64,000 nt of DNA from Bigelowiella natans CCMP2755 (GCA_000320545.1 ADNK01000461.1:1-64000), one strand, 5' to 3'. Positions 6,880-62,353 are shown, counted from the first letter of the stretch. A program made the numbers and translations. The notes: generated by a model not told the origin, from the letters alone.

Positions 6880-7958
6880 CTGAAGGTCTAACAATAATAA
6901 GCTTAGCCAAGTGCGAGTCGAAGCGCGGAAGCATCTGCATTATCGATCATGTTGTTAACGATTCCCACATCGATTAACGTCGATCGTTGTGAGGGATGCA
7001 TTGTATGCATCTCTGATCTTATAGCTTTGCCAGGCACTTACATGGAGATGGAGCTCATCCACTCACCTCGCACATCTGTAACATCTGCCAGACTAGTATA
7101 TACACTGACATGCTAGCATGCTGCACAGTGTAGTCATGCAACGTGCTAGCTATAGTAGCGTGCGCGTATACGTACAATGTGACTTTTTATTACACATTCT
7201 AGCATTGTGCACGCACGCTACATCACATTATTGCTAGAGCGTACATGGCCATTCGATTCTATAGCATTATTGCAGCTGACATGCATGTACGTAGCGTCCA
7301 CGTGTGCATGGCTACATCTCATTACATACTAGCATATTGCGCGCGGGATGATATGCTCTAGCTTGAAAATTTTAATTTATTCACTACACACTGCACATAT
7401 CGATCCGTCGCACACATAGCTAGCTAGCTAGCGCCAGCTAGCCAGCATGCTAGCATGCTGCACCAGTGATGGAATGAAAATGACACACTGAGCTAGTAAG
7501 TAGCGCCAAAGACATGCCTCTTTGTCCCGCTCGATGGCAATGTGGATCGTATACTTGCACAAAACAAGACTTTGTGTGCATTCTAGCATATCGTAGTGTC
7601 ACGTTGAGCATCCTGTCATCATGCTGTCGTCAATGCATGAGGACACCACACACGTGCATGCTCCCAACTCTGGAGGTGAACGTACTGCATGTGAGCGGTT
7701 ACTCTAGCATAGCTAGTACCTGTGTATTTCTACCTACGTGGCATGGCGGCATGTAGTTCCACAGTTGCATCTATCTGCACCCGTTACGTGGCGGGGCATG
7801 CATGAATAAGGTCAAACGTGTGTTCATTTGTCTGTGTAAACAAACTAGATAGCTAGCCGCTGCTGATACAGTACACTCGCAGTATGTAGCATCTCATTTG
7901 CAAGCGTATGATATATTTTAAGGTGAAACGTAACATCACATTGCGATAGCGCTCAACG

Positions 7959-14243: not shown

Positions 14244-15206
14244 AATAAGGACCATGACCCATACACCTCAATTTTAGCATCTGAGCCTCTATTCTATCAG
14301 GTGCTCAGAGATATTTGTCCAAATCTGCCCGTGAAAAAGTTCAAAATTCAGATCAATACAGATTCGTGTATTGCTAGAAACGCAGTTGTGTAGTTGCTTC
14401 CAGTTGAATAAATCGCGTTGTTTTATGCTCTTTAATTTCACCTCATATACCGCTTAGTTTCCAAAAAACTTAGTCTTGTCGTTCTATAGAATATACCACC
14501 GAAATACAATATCGTGCGAAAATTATGCCGGAATAGAATCGTATCGTCGACAGATAATATATTCAATTGTGTACTATTTTTATTTGATGACTTGATTCAA
14601 ATCGAATGGTGAATCTATTCGATCCTCATCACGTCGAATATTTTGAATTTCAATAAGATATATTGATTTTGTCCTTCACAAGTAAGAGGGGTTTTATGAC
14701 CCTTACAGTCAGTTTGTGTTGTCATCTATGCTAGTGTCTTTGTTGTTTGCTTTCTGTGAGTGAGTGATGTGAGTGAACAGCAAAAAGTTTATATGGTTTG
14801 ACAACAAAATTTATTTAACTAAAATGAATCAAAATGTCTCTAGATACGGTTGGAATCCATTCTGCTAGTCTTTATAGATTGAAGAAGAAATTTTGTTATT
14901 TATCTGTCGGACTACTTCGTTTGTATGTCCATTCTTGGTCCAAAATACGATACAATATTTGCGCTGATATATGCCATGCATATACCACGCCGTCCACGTA
15001 TCGATACTTAACATGAAATTACATTCCTCGCAGGGGTTATGCCAACACTGATTTGTTGCTGCTAGCTATTGCTAGACCTGCCGCACATAGCTGTATCGTA
15101 TTGTATGCAAGCTGACATTAAACATGTGTGTTACTTTGTTCCTTTGAAAAATAGCAGCACGAAGGGTTTTGCTGTCGGCAGTCGCTTCAATGTTGATAAT
15201 ATATAT

Positions 15207-15279
15207 ATGAGACGGATGTAATGAAATGTTTAAATTTTTTCAACGGTCATCCTAATGTAGCTGTGCAATGCAGCGGCTA
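15207..15279 (-). repeat. 73-bp duplicate of the retrotransposon 3' end (copy of 15331-15403), flanked by (TA)n
   Basis: Direct alignment at offset 124 shows 3 mismatches (15228/15352, 15244/15368, 15254/15378). Confidence 0.9.
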
Positions 15280-15353
15280 AAACAATATATATATATATAT
15301 ATATATATACATACATATGTACATACATGTATGAGACGGATGTAATGAAATAT

Positions 15354-18300
15354 TTAAATTTTTTCAATGGTCATCCTGATGTAGCTGTGCAATGCAGCGG
15401 CTACAGCGCTCAAATTGTGTCTGTTTGTTTCCTTGGTCACATGGCGCATGCATGAAAATGCATCATGTTTTGGTCTAGCATGTCGCGCTTTGCGCGCAGC
15501 TTCTCGACTTGTTTTTTCTGCGGTTGTGAGGCGCGTGGTCTCATCATTGCGATCCATGATCGCCGTCAGTTGTTTGTTGATTCCGAGTCTCTGTGGTCCG
15601 CATTTCCTGCATTGCAGAATGTGGTCCATGTCTTGCAGTGTGTTGCATGTGTCGCACATTGCTTCCAATTTTGTGCGTTGTCCTCTGGACAGCAGAAATG
15701 TTCCAATGTTGCCAACACCACAAATGGCGCGCATCCATGATGTGGCAATGCTTGGCAGCTTCAATGTGATTCCTGTTGTCCGAGAGCCATGCATGAAGTC
15801 AAGTTTTTTCAAATGCATGGCCTTGGTTCCCTCTTTGCTCCAGTTTGTTTTGAAGTTGGACACCGCGTTCCGCACAATCGTTTTGTTGTGTGCATTCAAT
15901 TTCCTTTTCAGTGTCTTGTTGGCAGCACGTGTTGTGGGGTGTTCCGCTCCAAGCAATTTGGTCGTGATCAAACTGAGTCGGCGATGCAAGGACACTCTGT
16001 TCCACGGCCTAGTTGTGTTGTGCCAATTGTGTTCCAGCAAGGATTCAATGTGGTGTCCGAAAGAGCTCCAATTGAGCACTTCTTCTTCCACCACGTGTCC
16101 GTTGCCATCAGCATCCTCCACCCATGCCAGCATGCATTGGTTCGCAACCATGTCTTGGTGCATTGAACTTGTGTGTGATGACGTGGTGGCAACGTTGCCG
16201 CTAGCACATGGGGTGTGTCGTTGGAAATGGATCCTGGTGATCCCAGCACTCTTTTGAGTGTTTGTGATTCCACGGAATCCAGCTGCTTTGTTTTGAGGTC
16301 ATTTTTGGACCTCCATGTGGGTGCGACACATCTGCTTGTGGCTGTGAACCACGTGTTGCAAAACTTCAATCTCACATTGAATGGCATGTGAGATCGTGTG
16401 GAGCACAGCCTGAGCAAGAATCTTCTCTTTTTCTGCAGCTTCAGATGTGCAACAAGGGCGTGTTTTTCGAAAGTTGATCTTTCGTCAAACCACAGTCCCA
16501 AACGTTTGCCACATTCTTTTCTTTTCACTTTTCCTTGCAGGTTGAGTGTCATGTTCCACAAGGCTTGTTTTTTGTGTGCATCCTTCCTCCTGTCCACAAG
16601 GAGGCATCCACTCTTTTCCCCATTGAATCTCATTCGCCACTTCACGCACCAGGTTGTCACACTTGTCAGATCTTTTTGCAGCCTGGTTTGCATTTCCCCC
16701 CAGCGGGATGGCGCAAGTGGTTTGCACGGGGTGACATCGTCGCAATGCATCTGGTGGTCAGCAAACTTGATGTGCTCGCACGTGTCGCAGCAGGTGATGA
16801 ACAAACAGCAGCTGAGGGAGGATCCTTCAGGTGCGCCGCTTTGCAGTTGCGTGTGTTGTGACAGCATGCTGCCAAATTCAAACCTAGCAGCACGCTCCCT
16901 TGGCCAATCATCGATCCACAGAAGCAGGCATCCCCTTGCACCACACTTTTCACTGAGTTTCCGCACCATTCCTGAATGCCAGGCTTCAGGGTGAGCTTTT
17001 GATGCGTCAGTGAACAGCACGATGCCGATCAGTTTTTTGTCAAACGTGCCGTCTTCGATCCGCTGAGTCATTCTGGACAGTCAGCGCTGTCTCGCATGAT
17101 CTGTTCTTCGTGGAAGCGCATTGACATCTGCTCAGCTTCTCTGGTGGGATGGCTTCGCGCAGTGCAAGTTCAACCAATTTGTCTTCGACTTTCGAAGCAA
17201 TTTGGAGAAGTGAAATTGTTCTGCCGTTGAGGGGGTGTTTGATTCTTTCCCGGGTTTGGGGATCAAGCAGAAGACACAGCAGCTTTTCGTGATTTGTGAC
17301 GGGTGCCCCATTGAAATGACACATTGAAAAAAAGAGCCCAGAGTTGATGCAGCTTGTTGCTTTTCTTCAACACATTCAGATGGATGCCATCGTCACCTGG
17401 GGATTTGTGTGGTGACATTGTGTGCAATGTTCTCTGGATTTCCTTGGGGGTGAATTTCCTGTTGCAAGGCAAGGTGCCACATTTGTTCTCCGAACTTCGG
17501 AAGGTGTGTCTCCACTGTTCGGTTTCTTGGTGAAACGTTCCATTTTTCCTGTCTGCAAGATGCATGAGGTTTGCAAGTGCGTCCTTCCAATTCGAGACAC
17601 ATGCTTGGCACTTTTTCGTTTCTGAAGTCTCACTGTCGAGGGTGCGATGTTTGTCCATCCCTCCAGACTTTTGGAACAATTTGCACAAAAGTCCAGTGTG
17701 GTTTCCATCATTGTGTTTCTCGAAGCGAGCAAGAAATTTTTGCCATGCTTCGTGTTTGAGTGTTTCTGTGACGGATTCAAGTTCAAAGTTGATCTCTTTG
17801 ATTTTTTTCTCCAATTTTTTCCTCTTGTTGCATTTCCTCTCGTGTCTGAGAGATCTGAAAAGTTTGACTTGTTGTGATTTGATTTTTTTGCAAGCTGGGT
17901 GGTTTTGGTGTGGCTCAATGGAGCTCCATTGTTGCTGTTTCTTCGGCGCACCAATTCTGTGTGCTTTTTGAACTGAATTCCAGAACCATTGTTCAACGTT
18001 CTTTGAATCCGCCTCCGATGCAACGCGAAGTGTTCGTTGTCTCAAAGGGGCTGTGACCGAGTCCAGGTGTTTGTCAAACAGGTCCACATTGAATTTGTCA
18101 ATGTCATGAATCATTGATTTGGTTTCCACTGGGTTGGGCACAGCTTTTCCAAAGTGCATGCCGAAGTGGTCGCTTGTTGCAGTGGTGGTCACTTGATGTT
18201 CAATTTCTTGGATCACGTTTGACGAGCAAAGGACATGATCGATCGTGCTCGCATGTCCTTTCCGAAAATGGGTCACTTCGCCAGGGTTGAGCATCACGAT

Positions 18301-18849
18301 GTCATTGTCTGCGAGCCACTGGTGCAATGGTTTGCCCCGCCTGTCTTCTTGGTGACGGACATCAAAAGTGGAATGTTCAGCATTGGTGTCGCCAACAATG
18401 ATGTGATGTTTCCATTTTTGTTTCTTCACAGTGTCCGTGATGAAGTCAAGCCTTTCCTCAAGATGGCACACATCGTGAGGTTGCAAGCACACCATTGTCA
18501 TTGCACGTTTTTCTGTGCGATGTGAGAAGAAACTCGTGTCGCGTTTGTTGTCATCTGTGGTTGTGTGCACGATGTCTGCACTTTTCTGGCGCAGGCCGAA
18601 GCTCCCAGAAGGGCCATCAGTGCGAATGATCTCGCATCCAGGTGGCGGATGTGATTTTTCATTGTTTTTTGATCTGCCCTCTGCAAACCAAGCAAGTTCT
18701 GTGTTGTTTGCAGTTGTTGTTTCTTTGATCACGTTGCATCTCCGGTTGATTCTTTGTCTCCCTTGTTTGTCCGTCCCATTTTTGCTCCGTGTGTTTTGGA
18801 AGCAGAACGGCAAGGCTCCAAACACTCTTGAGTCTTCTTCTGTTCTCAT
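15354..18849 (-). pseudogene. LINE ORF2 (AP endonuclease + reverse transcriptase + zinc knuckle) broken into at least 4 frames
   Basis: ORF pieces 17263-18849 (EN), 17040-17324, 15968-17071 (RT) and 15354-16163 (CCHC). Catalytic YxDD reads HCDD. No Tyr in the 528-aa or 367-aa pieces. Confidence 0.88.
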
Positions 18850-20110
18850 GTGCCCTGATCCGCAGCCATTTGCCTTGGCACGTGATTTCAGTGTTCAGTG
18901 ATTTTTCGACTTCCTCTTGGGAATTTGCAAACAATTGGACCAATGGGCCCTTCCCCATGGATTCCACTGCTTCGATTTTCACGTCTTCAGTGCTTGTTTC
19001 AACAATTTGGTTGGCCATTGCATTGCGCACTGCCTTTCTCTGTTCACCAGGTCCCAATCGTGGTCCTTTCATCACCACGGAATGGTTGGTTGGTCTTGAT
19101 GTGGCTGGGCGAATGGTTGTTGCAAATCTGAACAGAGAAGGGAAGAATGGTGCTGAAAGCTTCTTGTGCTCGGCTTGCAGTTCTTCGATGTGAACATCCA
19201 CTTTTGGTTCTTTGCTGCCCCTGAAAAACAATTTCAGATGGTTTCTTTTCCCAGTTTTGCATTGAACGCCTTGGAACACGTTTCCGCATTTCTTCACGAA
19301 AGTTTTGTGCACAGCGAGTTCAGTGAGGCCCAGTTTTCCAATGACATCGGGTGCAATTTCTGAGTTTGTTTTCCCGACGTTCAGGGACACGTTGTCAGTT
19401 GGTGTGGTTTCTGCCGGCTCCGTCGGTTTGGGCAGGGTTTCAATGGTCTCATTTTTGTTCTCATCTTCCTCGGAGTTCATTGGTGCATTTGAGTCAATTT
19501 GTCTGTCCGCATCACTTGTTGTTGGATTTGCCTTGTCATCGGGGGAAAACGTTGCCAATTTTTTCTCGGTGCTCTGGTTGCTTGGTGTGGCAGGTTGGTG
19601 TTCTGTGCCATTGCATGTCCTTGTGAAGTTTCCCGTCTTGTTTGCCTTGGGGGTGTTGTGGGCCTTTGCATGGGCGTCACCGTTTCATCGTTGCGACTTC
19701 TAGACACAACAGTTGCGCAGGAGTTTTCGTCTCGTTGCGGGGCTGGGGTTCCTGGTTGCCGCAAACCTCGGGGGGATTGGTTCCTTTCAAGTGTCATTGG
19801 TTCTTGTTCAACCTTGGTCAGCCTGGATTTCAGCGAGGTGTTTTCCTCGATGATTTTGTTTTGGTCATCCATGATTTTTTCCAAAACAGTGGAGAGAATT
19901 CTGTTGAATTTTTCCACGTTTGCTCTTTTGTCCCGACTTTGGTTCATCGTGTCAGGTGTGACGTTTGCGAGTGCCTTGCGGATGCATTGAGAAAGGTCGA
20001 AGTCCTTCCTGTCCTCACCTTCATCAATGGTGTCTTCATTTTGAAGGTTGGAATCGAAGTCATGAATTGAACATGCGTTTCCTTCCTTTGTTGTTGCTTC
20101 TGTGTGTTTT
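18659..20110 (-). pseudogene. LINE ORF1-like region (coiled coil plus low complexity), frameshifted
   Basis: ORFs 19477-19947 (heptad-like KIIEENTSLKSRLTKVEQ) and 18659-19558 lie immediately upstream of ORF2 on the same strand with the same TA-free composition. Confidence 0.6.
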
Positions 20111-21186
20111 GCTTCATTGCTTGAAAGCTCAGTTTTGCTGCGCGCAGCGCAGGTCTTCGCTTTGCGCAGCTGCGCGAGGAGAAGAAGCTGGCGCAGCGGT
20201 CACTGGGCCGTTTGAAACATTGTGTGCATGCCAGCATGTGCACACGTGCATTTGTGTGTGTGCATGTGTGCATGTGTGCAGACACATGCCTTTCACATCT
20301 TCGCACTGCAGCCTTGATGATTCTAGAATTGTGAATCAGCTGATGATGAGCTCACGAGCTTGCACATGTGGGACACTGCGTCTTTGATGTGCATGCGTGA
20401 GCTTGCGCACATGGATGCACGCAACCTTTGAGTTTGCCATGCAAGAAGCATGTGTTCATAGCAGTTCAAGCAAAACGGAACTAGCACATGGGTTCGATGC
20501 ACGTAGCAGGATGTCAAGGTCGATCATGCATGCACAATGCTGCGCCCCAGCGCCCTGCTAACCTGCTCTCGTGCTAGAGAGCGTGATGTCCACAGTGATG
20601 GCATCTACAATCGCAATCAGGCGCATCTGCTGCAACAGGCTTGTCATTCAAGCACGCCAGCGGCCAGGGCCTGCATCACAGCTGCATGGGCTATCTAGAT
20701 GCATTTTTGGGCAATTGCGCAGTCCATGTGAGTCTATGCACATGCTGCAGCAGCATTTGATGCGGTTTGCGAAGCTAGTATCATTGCATCGTGCAGCGCA
20801 TCTAGCAACATGTACCACAGAGACAGAAGTTAACAACAACTCAACATGCGTTCTCAACATGCTAGATTGGCACTTCTATCTCTACAACGCGCGCTAGCGC
20901 GGTCGTGTCGACGACACTATGTGACATTGTCAAATTGTTGCAACATCACTCAGCACATGCGAACGGTCGAAAAGAATGCATGGCAGATGCGCACATTCAC
21001 ATGCACAACTGCTAAACCTACAACGCTTGCTGCTGGACAGATAAAGAGACAGAAATTCACAAATAAAGCGATATTTATGGCATGTAGCACATGTGGCGGG
21101 AGCATACATGTAGTACATCATAAAATATAGCTATGTACATATGTGTACAAGAATATTTTCAGATATTACATCAAACTAATTTAGCC

Positions 21187-37039: not shown

Positions 37040-38260
37040 GTGCTGAAGACTGCATGGTCACTGTCTTACGGATGATTGGTCTCAACAAATGCATGCTCGT
37101 TGCGTCAAAAATCCTTTTGTTTGGGTGTTGACCTTGTGCAACTATCGCCATTTCTTCAAATTGAAACTCACATCTTGAATGCCATGCACACACTTGCATG
37201 GCGAGCCTTGTCATTTGCAGCATTCTGGCATTCAGACATCACATTGCTAGATGTCGGGTGGGGCTGAGATTGGCCGCAATCGCAAGGGCCAGTTGCGCTC
37301 TTCAAAATGAACCAATCACATTTTTTTCTGACTGCGTTGGGGTCGCATCATTTTTCGATGAAAATGCAGACGACCATGCTCATTTCCCCTCCACCCACGC
37401 CAGCACGTTCGCTCATTGCAGCGCTGGAGTTTGTGTGCGCGCGTGTGCACGCGCTGCTGAGTGAAATCGATGCAGAATCATGCAAGTGATGCGTGAGAGC
37501 ATCGCAAAAATGCAAGCGTCATCCACAAACCATCAATGCACATGCGTGCTGAGCACAAGCACGCTCACAGGTGGCGACGGGCGATGATGTGCACGCAGTG
37601 CCATGCACAATGCTAGAATGTGACAATTGCGCGCGCACTTTTTGGTCTAGCGCAGCGAATTTTTGTCCAATTTCGGATTTTTTTGCAGATTCAGAACTGT
37701 CATGATCAGCGCTTTGAGGAGGTCTAGAGGTGTCAACCATTTCAATCAACAGCCAGTGCACTTGTTTGAAAAGTGCTCAAGTTTCAAAAAACCCATCAAA
37801 ATTGCCATACTGGCGTAATTGTGCACCAAAAACAGCTGTTTCTGGGCGTTTTCATGCATGGTCATTGTGAAATTTGAGCACTTTGTGCGCGCGCGGTGCA
37901 TTTTTGCAGTTGAATGCGTGTGCGTCCGCCTCGGCACGCAGAGGAATGTGGGGAAAAGAACAGTGCAAAAACTCCATTGCAAAAACCCACGAAACCTGCC
38001 ATGTGCGGGGTTTGACCAAGTTGTACGTGTGATGACGATGCGATGTGTTGGCATCACAAGTCTAGAAGTGCATGATAGTCGACAACAACATCGGCAGTTT
38101 CGATCATGCCCTCGTGCGCACAACGCTAGAACGGCATACGATGTGTGAGGAAGATGTGCGTGCTGCGCTAGAACTGCATACGATGTGTGAGGAAGATGTG
38201 CATGACGCACATCACGCAATGCTAGAATGTCATGTGTGTCTCATCATCAACACGACGGTA
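37040..38260. other. TpA-depleted, CTAG-retaining intergenic island
   Basis: Between ~37146 and 37806 the only TA dinucleotides are four CTAG sites. The region is TG/CA/CG rich and has no credible coding signal. Confidence 0.85.
38124..38202. repeat. 42-bp-period tandem duplication
   Basis: CGCTAGAAC(G/T)GCATACGATGTGTGAGGAAGATGTGC at 38124 and 38166. Confidence 0.9.
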
Positions 38261-40320: not shown

Positions 40321-41718
40321 GGCATTAACAAAATGAACGAGGTTTTGATTTATGCGGAGGAGGAAGACGCAACGTTGCAGGTCGTGACAGCGACAAAACA
40401 TCCCTGAGTACTCTTGCCACACTTTCGCGTTCAGGAATGATTGGGAAAATAAATCTTCCACAAGTAGCAAAATTAGTTGGGGCATATCACCTCTCAAACA
40501 TGTACATATAGCACAGAAGTGGCTCGTAAGAGAAGAAGTAATGAACAGAATGAGCAATATAGGATAGCGTGAAACAGCCTTCATGTACAAACCAAGTATT
40601 TCCTTTGAAAATGTATTCATTATGAGGTAAAAGTTACATCTTTGCTTCACAATATTACGGAGCATGCGTATCCCATGTATATTGTACAAATTGGGGTTTC
40701 AGATGCTGCTAGTGCGTAGTACTATGCGGCGTAAGATGGAACCAAATTATATGCATTTGCTCGCTCTTTAATTCCAATCAAAGCTGCTCTGAAATTTGTG
40801 CGTGCAAGCAAAAGTTGTGAGGCATTTTCTCTAATTCTTGCTTTATGGGCCGATGCATACAGTGCGCATATTTTATCATCATGTACATGTACACTTGTAC
40901 ACATGCGCATATGCTCACCTAGTCATGCGCTTCATGAGGATCTAGGGATGGCCATTGTACAAATTTAATTCAAATAATTCATTACATCCGTCGCTACATA
41001 CATGCACTTTCACAGCACACATGCATGCGTGCACATTTTAGACATTTTAAATGGTCTAGTGTCTAGTGCAAAGTGGTGTGACTGTATGTACGCATCGCAC
41101 GTGATCGACACGCGTATATATGTAGTACTGCTACCATAAATTCTAGAATTATTAGAATTAGCGGTTCGGAGCGTAATTCGAATTGTATCATTGCTAGCGT
41201 CAACCGCGCAAGTTCGTGTAAACGTGTCTCTAACTCGTTAAGCAATTTTGGAGTACATCGCTGGACGCAACCTCAGCGCAACTATTACAACAGGACTTTC
41301 TGGGCGCGCATGTCGTGGCTGTGTCTAGCTGCGCGTGCGCTCAACATTTACAAACTAACACAGAATTAAATAAATTCATTTGGACAAGTAACAATTAACC
41401 CTGCTGTTGCTAGCTAGCAACTGCGCGCATTTTATAATTTGGCACGACAAAATAGGCATATCCTGCCACAGACTATGTGTACGTATATAGCTCTAGAGCT
41501 AGCTAACACTAATGTAGAGCTAACCTAGTAACATGCATGTTTCTAGCATGTTTGTTCGCTTGAATTGACACACTACAGACTACGATACACGCGCTGCATG
41601 TGTGCGATGCAAGCACCTACACTATGAGCCGTAGTGTCAACCAAAAACATATGCCATGTGGTGCGTGCGCCATATAAACGGCTACGTACTACACGCCAAC
41701 TGGTCTAGTTTCTCGCTC

Positions 41719-54489: not shown

Positions 54490-57400
54490 TGTTGAGCTCC
54501 ATGCACACTAGCGCATGAAAACCATGCAAGTGTGTGATGTGACAGAAAGAATTATTCGAAAATTTACACAAGGAGCGAGCACATGAAATCAGAAATCATC
54601 GCTTGTGATCACAGCGCCAACAACTTCATTGTCATCATCCAGTGATTGAATGGAGTGTGTTTCTAATGCGCTTTCACAAATGGTTGATTTTATGTCGCAC
54701 CTGCGCAGCCTGCAGCCTGTAGCCCTGCATGCTGCATTGCTTCGATCTTGCATGGCGCAACAACGCTGCAACGATGACATGCATGTGCGAGCTCAGTGCA
54801 CCAATTTTGGATTTTTGTCAATGCTAGAATGCACTGAACCCACTCGATGATGGGGTTGCCTAGTTGCGTGTGTGAACAACTGTGCGCCAGTGTGTGCTAC
54901 GCTTGCGACGCTGTGACACGCACGGCTAGACGGAGCCGCCTGCATTGCACCATTGCACTGTGAATACGCTTCATCACAGGCTGCAATGTGCGCAGGTGCA
55001 TGTTTCTAGTCGTGGCTCATGCACATCGATTGCTAGATCGCACTGGATCGTTCGATTCATCTTGTTCTAGTGTTGTTCGATCGAGCTGCCGCGTGGCAAA
55101 TCATCACAGCTAGACAGCCGCCAATCTGCTAGTCTGGCCATCGCATCGACTTGCGCTAGTTCGATTGACAATGCCAGAATGAGAGCCAGCGCGAGGCCCG
55201 GCGGCCGCGCTAGCGCGGTAGCGAGAATCACAAGCAGGAGAATTGTGGAGAGAGAGTTTAGCAACTGTGGTCGGTCGCGCTGCTCGCCAATTACAGCAAC
55301 ACTGCGTGCTAGCGTGCAGCCTGCATCACTTAGCGCGGTCACACACGCAGCGCCAGCACGAACAAGCAATGTGCGCAGCGAGCAAACGTGCAAAACGCGC
55401 ATGCTGGCACTCTGGCACTGATCAAGAGCACGCTCATTGTTTCAATTTCGATGCAAACCTTGTGATGCGAATAGCCCAATTTCGATGCTTGACGAATTCA
55501 TTCACACGCAGGGAGCACAGCCACAGCAGAGCTGGAGGGCCCCAGCTGGCCAGGCTCGGATCAGTGTGTGCGTTGTGCAACAACATTGAGACACTCAGCG
55601 ATCACGCTAGCACGCCTCTGTTCTTGAAGAAGACTGACTGGTGCACACCCACCAGGCACAGCCCTGTTTTTCAGAGCAGATCCGCCAAAACAATGGAGCC
55701 ATGAAGGCCACACTTGTGCATGCGCGCACGAACGTGTGCAGTCACACACACACACACGTTTTTTCATCCCACCCTGTGTCCCACAAAGCACACATGTTGG
55801 CATGTGTCCTAGACAGGGTGCACGAATGGAGCTACAAAGGCCATGTCAAATCACCTGTTGTGCACTTGGTGCGCGATCAGCCAGCTGCTCGCTTCCAGAC
55901 TTTGTTGTTCTAGTGTTGGCCAAGACCCTGCTTTGTGAGACTTCTCGTGCCATCAGATCAGAGCATCATGGCATACTTCTTTCTTGTGTTCTTCTCAGAG
56001 CACAAACTCAGTTGAACCAATGAATGAAACATCAAAACATTGATTGCGATGAGGGGAGTGGTTCGAATTTGAATTGATCTTGGTGAAGACCAGTGCTCCA
56101 CGCGAGTCGAATCATTTGAAACAATGACGTCAATGGGTGGGCATTTCTGCACACAGATTGAAATGCAATGATGAAACATCGCAGGCAATTTTGCTTCTCG
56201 TGCATTTAGAAGTAAATCTCAAAAAATACATTTTCAATTTTACGATTGTGCTGAAAAACTGCTGCTTCCTGGAAGTCTCAAACATATTGGGACATTTTTG
56301 TGACAACCACCTCAAAACCCTTACTCTAAAACAAAATGATTAACATTTTACAGATTTGTAGGCTGTTTCTTGTGAATCATGGCTCATCACCTTGACTCAA
56401 CAACTAAATCCAATGCTTCTTTTTGATGCACACAACAAACAATTGTTCTGGAACAAAAGAAGATCTTTTCGTGACGAAAGGAAAGCTGTAGAGGAAACTG
56501 CACACAACAGAAACACTTGTCTCTGATTTGCTTTTGTGAAGATGGCGAGCGCAGGTTGGCTTGACACGCATAAAAGATTGATGATTAGGCATTCACAAAT
56601 ACAAATGCTGATGTGCTAATGTGCTAATGTGTTGTGTCGTTGTGTCGTGAGTTTAGCATTGAGTTGTTCAAACTACGAACACGTTGTACCACAGCATTTC
56701 AGACATTAGACAGTTGACATGTTTGATGCGTCCTCAAAAAATGACGCAAAGATTATGTAGGAGGACAGCAACAGCAACCAAATGAACCAGCGTGCTGCAC
56801 GAAATGTGTTGATGGTCTCCAAAACATGGATCCAAATGCGCTCACATACATCTTAAAAGTGGTCAACATCATCAACGCAGCCCTCCTTGCATTTTCTGGA
56901 ATATGGGTTTTCATCACCGTAAATCCGAATCTTCTTCTGGTTCTGGCAGCGCTATATGTGATGTAATGTGAACACAATGTATTCCACTTATTTTGACATG
57001 AAAACCTGAATTAGTGCAACTTTGTGCTTTCCATCTGAAACATTGAAACGTTGTGTTCCGGTCCTCCGTTGTTCCCAGTACATTTAGTTTCGTCCTCCTC
57101 ATGTTCGAACTGAAGCTGGAGAGTTGCAACAGATGCTTTCTGAGAAATATGGGTTTCATGTTCAATTGGACTGGGAGGCTCCTATTTTTCATTTTGTACG
57201 ATTTAAATATTTCAACATGTTCTACTTTCACATGTGAATCACGGCATGTGTTGTTAGCGTTGGAACTCTTGCCTTTGGTCTGGGCGTCGTCGGGATTGGT
57301 ATGGAATTTGGGACATAGCACCATGATAAATTTAAATGTTCGTAAATTCTTAGTGGCAGTTTAGAAAATATGTTGTGATTTGTGTTCTCTTTCGGCCTCA

Positions 57401-58041: not shown

Positions 58042-59410
58042 AATGTCATTTTCGAATGTGTTTCCATGTGTTTCTTGTTTGTAAATGCGTGCTGAAGACC
58101 ATGATATGACTCAGGAAGCCCAAAATTGAAATGTGTGTAATTGTAAGAATTGATTACATGTAAATGTAAATGTTGCATAGGAGAGGCTTATTGGATCAAT
58201 TCTGCCACTGGTGAGCAGACCTGGGAACGTCCAACATGAGGAAGGCGCAATAATGTTCACAATGTACGAATCAACAGGCATCATTGACAAAGCGCAGCAT
58301 GCACTATTGCGCTGGCGTTCGCATTTGTTACATGTCAGCGGGACATCACTAATTGTGCAGTTCGTATATGCACGTAACAGTTGTGTGTGCAAGTAGAAAG
58401 AACTACATCATGACTAGATGACGAGCGCAGAGCGAAGTCATAATAGACTCAGCAATGTAACACACATGTCATGTGTGTGGTACATTGCATGTCCATCATG
58501 AGTGCACCTCACTAGATCAGGATGATCATTCTAGCATTGAAAACGTTCAATCCATTCTTCATTGCACCTGTCTCACGCACGTCACGTGCTTGCGGGAACA
58601 ATGCGACATCCAGGTGTGGGCTGCACGTGATCTGCGATCTGCACAAATGGGCGAACTAGCGAAACCCGGGAATTTCACGTGACGGTTTCGCATGTTTCTG
58701 TCCGCAAGAATGACTGAAGCAATGCAGCGGCACTGCACGATTTGTGTGCGAAAAAAAATGACACGTTTTGGCTTGGTTCGAGAAAAAAACTCAATTTTTG
58801 AATGTGCTGGAGGTCAGCTTGTCTGGTTGTGACAAATGAATGAGGCCTGAAAAAAAAGCGCAAAATTTCGAAGTCACTGAACTCAAAATTTCGCAGCTTT
58901 CTCATTTTCGTCATGCCTGGTGCTCTGTCTGCTGTCCATCAGGATGGTCATGTGCTCAAGCGTGGTGTTTTCAAATTCACTTTTTGATCATGCGTGGCCG
59001 CACTAGATTGCACCGAAAATGAGAGAATTTTCTGCCTTTTTTTGCCCTCCTAGAATTTTTGCGCATTTCGCCTACTTGCACATCTAGACATGTGTGCAAT
59101 CCGCATTTGCGCATCATGCATCACACCAAGCTTCACATTCGCATGCGAGATGGGTGATGACAGCATGACAACGTAACGTGCACATTGAGGTGCACATCAT
59201 TTCAACTTCGCCATGTGTGGTAGCTCAGCGCAAGATTGACACTGCTGATGCACATGACGTGAAATGAATTAGCGAGATTACATCTGTCGTGCATGCATGT
59301 GAAATTGTATGTGCAGTGTGCAAGTAGTTCATTTTGAAAAACTGACTATGCTAGCATTCATCATTCATGCATCAACAACTTCATGCAGAGTGGCCGAAAC
59401 CTTGCACGAA
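54490..59410. other. Large partially TpA-depleted, CTAG-retaining island containing one gene
   Basis: Most surviving TA in 54720-56000 and 58400-59150 are in CTAG or in CTA/TAG half-sites. TGCA/CATG/CGCG rich. Confidence 0.75.
56542..58239 (+). CDS. COPI-associated (TVP15-like) membrane protein with C-terminal WW domain, multi-exon (start uncertain)
   Basis: ILKVVNIINAALLAFSGIW..LAALYVI|FSFVLLMFEL...NMGFMFNWTGRLLFFI|VGTLAFG...INAAINVAIVCVHP. WW domain LPAGWREVRDEQSG|EAYWINSATGEQTWERPT-stop is split by an intron. Confidence 0.75.
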
Positions 59411-61662: not shown

Positions 61663-62353
61663 GTTCAGGTGGGGGAAATGAAATCAACAAGAAATGTGGT
61701 TGTGGGATTTTACTCAAAAAATATCTGCTCCCCAGCATACGTAGATGTAGCATCATCAGGCGCAAGAGAAATGAAGCATGCATGCATGTCCATGTTATCT
61801 AGTTATATCTAGACATGTAGATATATAGATGTGTTGCGATGCGCAGTCCAGCACGAACTCGCGATGCGATCGCAGCTAGCTAGCTCTAGAGCTGGTAACA
61901 GCTGGAATGACATGAGCAACATGTTGCTTGCCTGTGCGTGGCCCATAGCACGCCACGTTACGTGCCTGAATCATCGCAATCAACGACGACGCTCATCATG
62001 CATGTTGTCACGTGCAAGCAAATATGAGCTATTTATTAGCAGATGAACATGCTATAGCACTGTAGCATGCATGGCGCTAGCTAGATGGCACACAGCAACA
62101 ATGCGTGCGTGCGCTCGTGCCTTCACCATGATACCAAGAGTCTTTATTTATTTGGGCACAGCTAGACAGCACCCCAAAAAATTCGGCTGTAACAATTCGT
62201 AATAATGTGCTTCACATCGACTGCAATTGTCTGTCTGCTGGGCCAATGATAATAATATTTCGCCGAACGTACATCTAGAATATGTATCAGGGCTGCGCAA
62301 TGTTGTTCGTGATATAATGTGCGTTTTCTTAAAACAAATTTATTATCCCGTAT

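Follow-up and report, generated by a model that had tools for sequence, protein, structure and literature searches.

The stretch of Bigelowiella natans CCMP2755 DNA analysed here (the window, 64,000 nucleotides, contig C3276 of a 91.4-Mb assembly) contains a tract at positions 15404-20458 from which the dinucleotide TA is almost completely erased, and most of this tract is occupied by a long interspersed element (LINE), a retrotransposon without long terminal repeats (non-LTR). Within the 5,055 b of the tract, which include 1681 T and 932 A, six TA dinucleotides were counted compared to ~310 predicted from base composition, an observed/expected ratio (o/e) of 0.02, with the TA o/e of the whole window being 0.75. 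A preliminary description of this DNA, made by reading the bases alone, had claimed six TAs, each within CTAG, where a few hundred would be expected, and this was borne out: the T of each TA lies at 15476, 16010, 16202, 16885, 19701 and 20324, and the context is CTAG in all six. The final ordinary TA before the tract is at 15402, and the first TA beyond it that does not belong to a CTAG is at 20459. The o/e within the tract is 2.0 for CA and 1.41 for TG (rhoTA 0.02, rhoTG 1.37 and rhoCA 1.97 across 4.8 kb of it), and stop-type triplets consist of 112 TGA, six TAG and no TAA. CpG is not strongly depleted (rho 0.70), and the shift in base composition accounts for much of this decrease. Given that a gain in G+C by itself depresses the CpG ratio, CpG decay was uninformative about the level of cytosine methylation in the tract.

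The base-level support for the tract consists of exact 31-mers in independent Illumina runs together with many concordant copies. Exact 31-mers of positions 15000-21000 were present at 72-78% in 18 Illumina DNA runs from 2025, 28 other copies of the eroded LINE on other contigs are in the same TA-poor state with differing outcomes, and deep Illumina data have been mapped to this assembly in a recent preprint (Mettrop et al., bioRxiv 2026, 10.64898/2026.01.13.699255). The probability that the erasure is a sequencing or assembly artefact is, in light of this, negligible.

The coordinates of the element, its parts and the other features of the window are collected in Table 1. Within the element, a 528-amino acid (aa) frame matched the endonuclease-reverse transcriptase domain Exo_endo_phos_2 (E 1e-14), and a 367-aa frame gave a weak match to RVT_1 that lies under the curated cut-off because of erosion. 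The genome carries more than 50 matches to the element, most of them with a common 3' end and variable 5' truncation, and 25 copies begin at the common 3' end with their lengths ending between 540 and 4,900 b. The common 3' end combined with varying 5' truncation places the LINE on the minus strand. The 3' end is located near 15326, ~77 b to the left of 15404, and the longest other copies cease aligning near 20220-20227. The extent of 15404-20458 given in the preliminary description therefore holds for the erased tract, whereas the element itself reaches further left, with ordinary TAs persisting in that terminal part. To judge from these domains and copy ends, the window carries an almost complete copy of a LINE encoding an endonuclease and a reverse transcriptase (RT), and a 299-aa frame is probably the upstream portion of its coding region. 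Translation confirmed that the 528-, 367- and 299-aa pieces are free of Tyr and that the motifs HCDD, TIDH, PGC and GAPEG are present, as had been noted before.

The window additionally holds an isolated second copy of the 3'-terminal unit of the LINE, and both this unit and the element-attached one (~15326-15403) are matched by every copy of the eroded family. At 15377 the attached unit reads TG where the isolated unit has TA. Between the two lies a (TA)n tract that is pure TA on its far side, with CA and TG mixed in solely on the side of the element.

Table 1. Features of the erased tract, the eroded LINE and related sequences (window positions unless a contig is given)
Feature	Coordinates	Strand	Basis or remark
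TA-erased tract	15403..20458	none	TA-free apart from six CTAG
Eroded LINE (non-LTR retrotransposon)	15326..20227	-	Domains, copy ends, protein identity to intact APE+RT LINE
RT piece, 367 aa, Tyr-free	15968..17071	-	HCDD at 16736-16747 (His codon 16745-16747); YCDD in intact sister LINE
Endonuclease piece, 528 aa, Tyr-free	17263..18849	-	Exo_endo_phos_2
Open frame, 299 aa, Tyr-free	18659..19558	-	Without Pfam match
Isolated second copy of LINE 3'-terminal unit (~80 b)	15199..15279	-	TAs retained; internal unmutated comparator
(TA)n tract adjoining LINE 3' end	15286..15325	none	TA positions and sequence
Single-copy flank, LINE 5' side	20283..20458	none	Fully converted; rhoTA 0.09, rhoTG 2.09, rhoCA 2.11
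Fading edge	20459..20700	none	rhoTA 0.66; 8/8 surviving TAs with preceding C or following G (CTAN or NTAG)
CTAG survivor	15475..15478	none	Ancestral to LINE family; kept in 20/27 copies
CTAG survivor	16009..16012	none	Ancestral; kept in 22/24 copies
CTAG survivor	16201..16204	none	Ancestral; kept in ~13/20 copies
CTAG in window copy only	16884..16887	none	CTGG in 8 other copies
CTAG	19700..19703	none	Few aligned copies
CTAG	20323	none	Within single-copy flank 20283..20458
Erased tract on short dispersed repeat	37143..37816	none	Survivors are CTAG
TA-poor, CTAG-dense, G+C-rich stretch	54600..56200	none	CTAG each 30-50 b, many scar-type
Erased tract overlapping ~425-b dispersed repeat	58532..59004	none	TA positions and genome copies
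Intact LINE family member L055	contig C515:12500-18000		Also L059-L062, L069; normal TA

A survey of RT loci in the genome identified an intact LINE family with a first open reading frame (ORF1) of 413 aa and an ORF2 of 1,164 aa with both an APE and an RT domain, and ORF2 shares 60-65% protein identity with the eroded pieces. Members of this sister family have normal TA and encode YCDD, which aligns to the HCDD of all eroded copies. The replacement of Tyr by Cys or His, previously proposed from knowledge of non-LTR motifs in general, could now be measured: at the 36 aligned Tyr of the intact sister LINE, the eroded element has Cys at 15, His at 11, Phe at five and Tyr at none. In a codon-anchored DNA comparison, the 131 aligned TA of the intact LINE correspond in the eroded element to CA at 49 positions, TG at 33 and TA at none, compared to 33-63% conservation for other dinucleotides. 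As a separate observation, the final 265 aa of the intact ORF2 are encoded by TA-poor DNA (nine TA, against 41-55 per 300 aa elsewhere) and contain two Tyr and eight Cys. This patch recurs in three copies, and the 3' segment of the still-intact LINE may be old and partly eroded.

To follow single sites, the 28 other copies were piled onto the window copy and their states tallied column by column. TG and CA each occurred in at least two copies at 111 sites, with the three control dinucleotide quartets giving 19, 8 and 3. The 162 sites with an inferred ancestral TA gave 870 readings of TG, 862 of CA, 242 of TA and six of CG, with fewer than 20 other readings, so that ~88% of TA sites are altered in comparison to transitions of 1-4% per site elsewhere in the copies. 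The same site is TA, TG or CA in different copies and thus represents an ancestral TA altered on either strand. The near absence of CG (6 of ~2,000 outcomes) is explained by the remaining A following C once TA has become TG; this A is then protected, and a T before the A is therefore obligatory. Copy pairs that are ~96% identical at non-TA sites have 66-69% of their TA outcomes in common, and the recent DNA duplicates L008/L011 and Q/L025 have 100% in common. The low sharing of outcomes between near-identical copies indicates that most hits arose separately in each copy, and independence between copies is in this way established alongside the direction and the context of the change.

The ratio of TG to CA is ~1:1 in most long LINE copies. 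A runs test of TG and CA order placed eight of nine copies within +/-1 (z) and one at -2.2, and among the LINE copies there was neither a bias relative to the sense strand of the element nor a difference from locus to locus of the kind that a replication-strand effect would produce. A processive single-strand deaminase leaving long one-strand runs was considered and rejected, given that no such runs were seen in the nine copies. We infer an attack on duplex DNA, or on two strands that are equally accessible.

Could the family instead be free of TA by nature or selection, for example through avoidance of a TA-cutting nuclease or of TA-targeting insertions, with no mutator involved? All long copies of the eroded LINE are TA-free and HCDD is found in every copy that covers this site, as such an explanation would have it. 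However, single sites are TA, TG or CA between copies, TA persists in short copies and in the terminal unit, reading frames are broken with every Tyr lost, and an intact sister family with normal TA and Tyr exists in the same genome. Comparison between copies and with the sister LINE refutes this as the sole cause, and we consider it highly improbable. The proposal in the preliminary description that TA was mutated to TG or CA at the DNA level on both strands, and is not a matter of composition, is upheld by the tabulation of copies by context, by the sister LINE and by mutations observed in culture lines, as follows.

The process has been described from this alga in the preprint of Mettrop et al. 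(10.64898/2026.01.13.699255), in which mutation-accumulation lines of B. natans show de novo TpA hypermutation. Inside one giant-virus insert and one virophage insert were found 231 of 302 new point mutations, nearly all of them A>G or T>C at TpA and at ~1000x the background rate, with the activity confined to some lines. The giant-virus target is a single-copy insert, endonuclease-RT, RT and DDE domains are over-represented in TpA-poor genes, 124 TpA-poor clusters were counted, and an ADAT2 homologue was put forward as candidate enzyme (10.64898/2026.01.13.699255). The LINE tract conforms to this footprint in occurring in the same alga, in changes that consist almost entirely of A>G or T>C, restricted to TpA on both strands, and in its long-term state of low TpA with raised rhoTG and rhoCA. 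A tract erased to this extent offers hardly any remaining targets for de novo mutation. It differs in that the measured targets were viral inserts, and a retrotransposon family was not analysed copy by copy. The preprint text makes no mention of CTAG, LINE families, tract edges, strand runs or escaping intact families, and our literature searches returned no further description of the process. The core process is therefore already known from 2026, which renders outdated the earlier statement that no eukaryotic system of this kind had been described, and the LINE tract is a clear new example of it, not a new discovery.

An alternative timing must be weighed, in which copies are born mutated, their RNA or cDNA being edited during retrotransposition by an ADAR-like or APOBEC-like restriction. 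The tract matches the element at most insertions, and the flanks past the 5' truncation points of 25 other copies have normal TA (o/e 0.77) from the first 100 b. Some changes, such as HCDD, are common to all copies, and the outcomes otherwise vary between copies as they would for separately edited transcripts. Editing of one template, however, yields changes on one strand, and both strands were hit equally and without runs. In addition, the single-copy flank of the window copy is converted; the 3' terminal 100 b, which would be copied first, is the least altered part, with 45-55% of TA kept in the last 100 b inside the LINE 3' end in all copies; TA retention in the shared region is higher the shorter the copy (Spearman -0.61, p 9e-4, range -0.61 to -0.67), a modest effect derived from small counts and related copies; and the same changes appear in culture in resident DNA without transposition (10.64898/2026.01.13.699255). 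The latter four observations argue for action on the DNA in situ, and an origin of the changes through editing during retrotransposition is very unlikely. The preliminary description had also suggested that the effect runs past the element into flanking DNA. This is the case on the 5' side of the window copy (20283-20458), but a general spread of erasure into flanks was not seen in the 25 other copies. The edges of the tract are soft over ~100 b.

The context that survives within the tract was compared between copies and between loci. The three ancestral CTAG sites are retained in 65-92% of copies, compared to 0-25% for other interior sites, and the CTAG at 16884 probably arose anew when an ordinary G>A change restored a TA, which was kept thereafter. 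Young 8-b insertion scars, recognisable by identical 4-mers flanking the CTAG, are ruled out as a source of the tract CTAGs, given that none of the six is of this type and three are ancestral. Erased tracts of several families, together 52 kb, have 0.52 of the background CTAG density, with all other TA contexts at zero by construction, since erased tracts were defined as stretches without non-CTAG TA. In background DNA, CTAG makes up 5.9% of TA sites. Erased RT loci totalling 30 kb contained 31 CTAGs, of which 26 were non-scar. In Table S2 of the preprint (10.64898/2026.01.13.699255), a hand count of the base after the edited A gave A 67, C 52, G 20 and T 67, placing G at 0.45 of expectation (p ~1e-5, with expected frequencies taken from background DNA of the sampled loci). 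This effect of G after A as a half-site predicts, alone, ~20% survival of CTAG at the present depth of erasure, compared to the ~80% found, and additional protection would have to come from the C two positions before the A or from the whole palindrome. One-strand context rules, under which an A followed by G or preceded at two positions by C is never hit, were rejected because ATAG, CTAA and similar contexts have disappeared completely, with TG as well as CA in their place. Among TA contexts, the double half-site CTAG is the sole exception. CTAG in the LINE tract is a largely refractory context and not an insertion scar.

Erasure is distributed between loci in an almost all-or-none manner. Among 22 sampled RT loci, ~13 were erased (rhoTA 0-0.3), eight were normal and one was partly eroded, a bimodal distribution. 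Six sampled copies of the intact LINE are 99.4-99.8% identical with normal TA, few of their differences touch TA, and about a dozen loci have the long open frame of this family. An LTR-type retroelement (L054, contig C1129:121000-127000) carries a 1,657-aa frame with RT plus RNase H and has a rhoTA of 1.1 in the one copy read; more than 100 loci score equally with it in the RT survey, and its family seems to be young and to have escaped the mutator. From the figures of the preprint, 211 hits over 3,132 generations and 6,169 TA sites correspond to ~1.1e-5 per TA per generation, at which the half-life of a TA is near 6e4 generations, whereas a divergence of 0.2-0.6% at the background rate of 3.5e-10 amounts to millions of generations. 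Because this age far exceeds the half-life of TA, the intact LINE family would be exempt from hypermutation, rather than merely young, if these rates apply. The existence of multicopy families with normal TA, together with a single-copy giant-virus target, argues against a homology trigger such as that of fungal repeat-induced point mutation (RIP) and favours the state of the locus. The repeat-directed part of the original proposal is thus not supported; copy number is not the trigger, and the target would be selected by a state of the locus or family, most likely silencing. Separately, the partly eroded locus (L063, contig C994:200-3200, rhoTA 0.43) shows a gradient along 3 kb and is a candidate for the process caught in progress. 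Short copies of the eroded LINE that are likewise only partly eroded lie, for instance, on contigs C1680, C616 and C1129.

With regard to the enzyme, the genome contains one A_deamin locus, probably of ADAT1 type, on contig C2414, and six CDA-fold loci, which by motif comprise two guanine/cytosine-deaminase-like paralogues, a TadA-like gene on contig C3286, a dCMP deaminase, an ADAT3-like gene with a degenerate active site, and a short fragment. An ADAR gene would combine A_deamin with double-stranded-RNA-binding domains, and the C2414 locus is the single A_deamin locus. Judged by these motifs, the A_deamin and CDA-fold genes look like housekeeping genes. The preliminary description had named a DNA adenine deaminase of the TadA/ADAT fold as one candidate and had suggested a search for lineage-expanded forms fused to chromatin readers, but among these loci there was no expanded family and no obvious chromatin-reader fusion, in a search that did not extend to divergent deaminase clades. 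TadA and ADAT2-ADAT3 edit an A that follows U or T (U33-A34 in tRNA), which is a likeness to the present context shared by TadA-derived base editors, and ADAT tRNA substrates often have G after A34. Since G after the edited A is a disfavoured context here, this counts as a difference from ADAT2/3. To our knowledge ADAT2/3 occurs in every eukaryote, and its presence in the genome therefore carries little weight. The role of the ADAT2 homologue put forward in the preprint (10.64898/2026.01.13.699255) is that of a candidate.

A dedicated mutator may also be dispensed with altogether if TA in silenced DNA carries a mark, such as a methylated A or modified T, that is placed symmetrically by an enzyme not accepting CTAG and that promotes miscoding in the way 5-methylcytosine does at CpG. 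TA is self-complementary like CpG and its strands were hit equally, the state of each locus is all-or-none, the exclusion of one context is sharp, and no expanded deaminase family was found. Such a mark is not known to us in this alga, and passive decay would hardly be expected to reach the preprint-derived rate of ~1e-5 per TA per generation. Activity in some culture lines only (10.64898/2026.01.13.699255) would fit an epigenetic state of this kind. We regard a base mark as rather unlikely on balance, but as a serious rival.

Taken as a whole, the evidence is best explained by a LINE that, once inserted, was struck by the TpA-specific transition hypermutation of B. natans, with the state of the locus and not copy number picking the target, a reading to which we assign a probability of roughly 0.85. 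A LINE copy would first have been laid down in the chromosome and hypermutated afterwards in situ. At each TA step the A of the top or bottom strand would become G, yielding TG or CA, and after the first change the other A would no longer follow T and would be safe, so that CG would seldom result. Hits would fall equally on both strands without runs and cover all of the element but about the outermost 100 b, and on the 5' side of the window copy erasure would continue into unique DNA for a few hundred bases. TA within CTAG would be mostly refractory, and coding capacity would be destroyed through loss of all Tyr codons, including the change of YCDD to HCDD. The process would be targeted by locus or family state, most likely silencing.

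Several points weigh against this reading or some part of it. HCDD is common to 11 of 11 copies that cover the site, and closer LINE relatives have more TA outcomes in common, from which it follows that part of the loss was inherited or preceded insertion. The source copies were probably already partly eroded during the spread of the family. The argument for exemption carries the preprint rates over to other loci, the context expectations do not derive from the giant-virus region itself, and the CTAG and context statistics depend on few independent sites in related copies. In addition, both the deamination of adenine to inosine and the guidance by chromatin or small RNA would be conclusions drawn indirectly.

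A more specific form of the preferred reading can be put forward tentatively. A heritable signal of the locus or family, either small RNA or chromatin, would steer the mutator and separate the eroded LINE from its intact sister. The mutator would act on duplex TA steps on either strand with CTAG as a blind spot, and would depend on an enzyme or a base mark distinct from housekeeping ADAT2/3, the candidate proposed to date. This combination is possible, although we hold it to be doubtful in its entirety.

Hypermutation of the LINE shares with fungal RIP the dense transitions in mobile DNA, fairly sharp edges, a dinucleotide preference and ruined frames. RIP, however, changes C to T (CpA to TpA) and so creates TA, whereas the change in B. 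natans is A:T to G:C. RIP is also triggered by duplication, whereas in B. natans multicopy intact families are untouched and single-copy DNA is hit. Like ADAR hyperediting and APOBEC3, the process disables mobile elements through deamination-type transitions, and ADAR favours a U before the edited A. Those enzymes have RNA or single-stranded cDNA as their substrate and produce clusters confined to one strand, whereas in the LINE tract both DNA strands are affected equally and without runs, the substrate is resident DNA, and a T before the A is obligatory; one-strand A-to-G clusters of the ADAR type were not found in the LINE copies. CpG decay by deamination of 5-methylcytosine likewise removes a self-complementary dinucleotide from silenced DNA with TG and CA as products. 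The loss in the LINE tract differs in starting from TA and in being complete rather than partial, with CpG not strongly lost.

A natural A:T to G:C process acting on mobile elements and viral insertions in the chromosome runs in the opposite direction to fungal RIP and APOBEC-type defence, and the responsible enzyme could be a natural DNA adenine editor. Credit for the discovery belongs to the 2026 preprint, and the LINE locus adds constraints for any mechanism: equal and independent strand hits, one per TA step, with CTAG largely immune; edges that are soft over ~100 b; and an all-or-none state per locus that exempts young intact families despite high copy number. The presence of an eroded LINE family and its intact sister in one genome constitutes a clean natural experiment.

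Beyond the LINE, erased tracts occur elsewhere in the window (Table 1). Two families of short dispersed repeats, at 37249-37845 and 58654-59078, have dozens of copies with 70-83% identity and some inverted parts, and are erased in the window and in most of the fetched copies (L034, L036, L040-L044). The TA-poor stretch at 54600..56200 had no second copy elsewhere in the genome search.

CTAG and Table S2 of the preprint (10.64898/2026.01.13.699255) gave further observations. For the giant-virus region it records 17 cases of T>C in CTA against three of the mirror change, A>G in TAG, where strand symmetry predicts equality. Short insertions that end in ACA make up many of the 21 indels. Of the 194 CTAGs in the window, 36 have the same 4-mer on either side (NNNN-CTAG-NNNN), compared to ~0.8 expected by chance. 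These scar-type CTAGs, for example at 54824, 54860, 54926, 55067-55309, 37613, 37724, 58531, 58656, 7113-7450, 40942-41525 and 61799-62162, cluster in TA-poor islands, and none lies in the LINE tract. The refractory and the scar readings of CTAG both hold, at different places.

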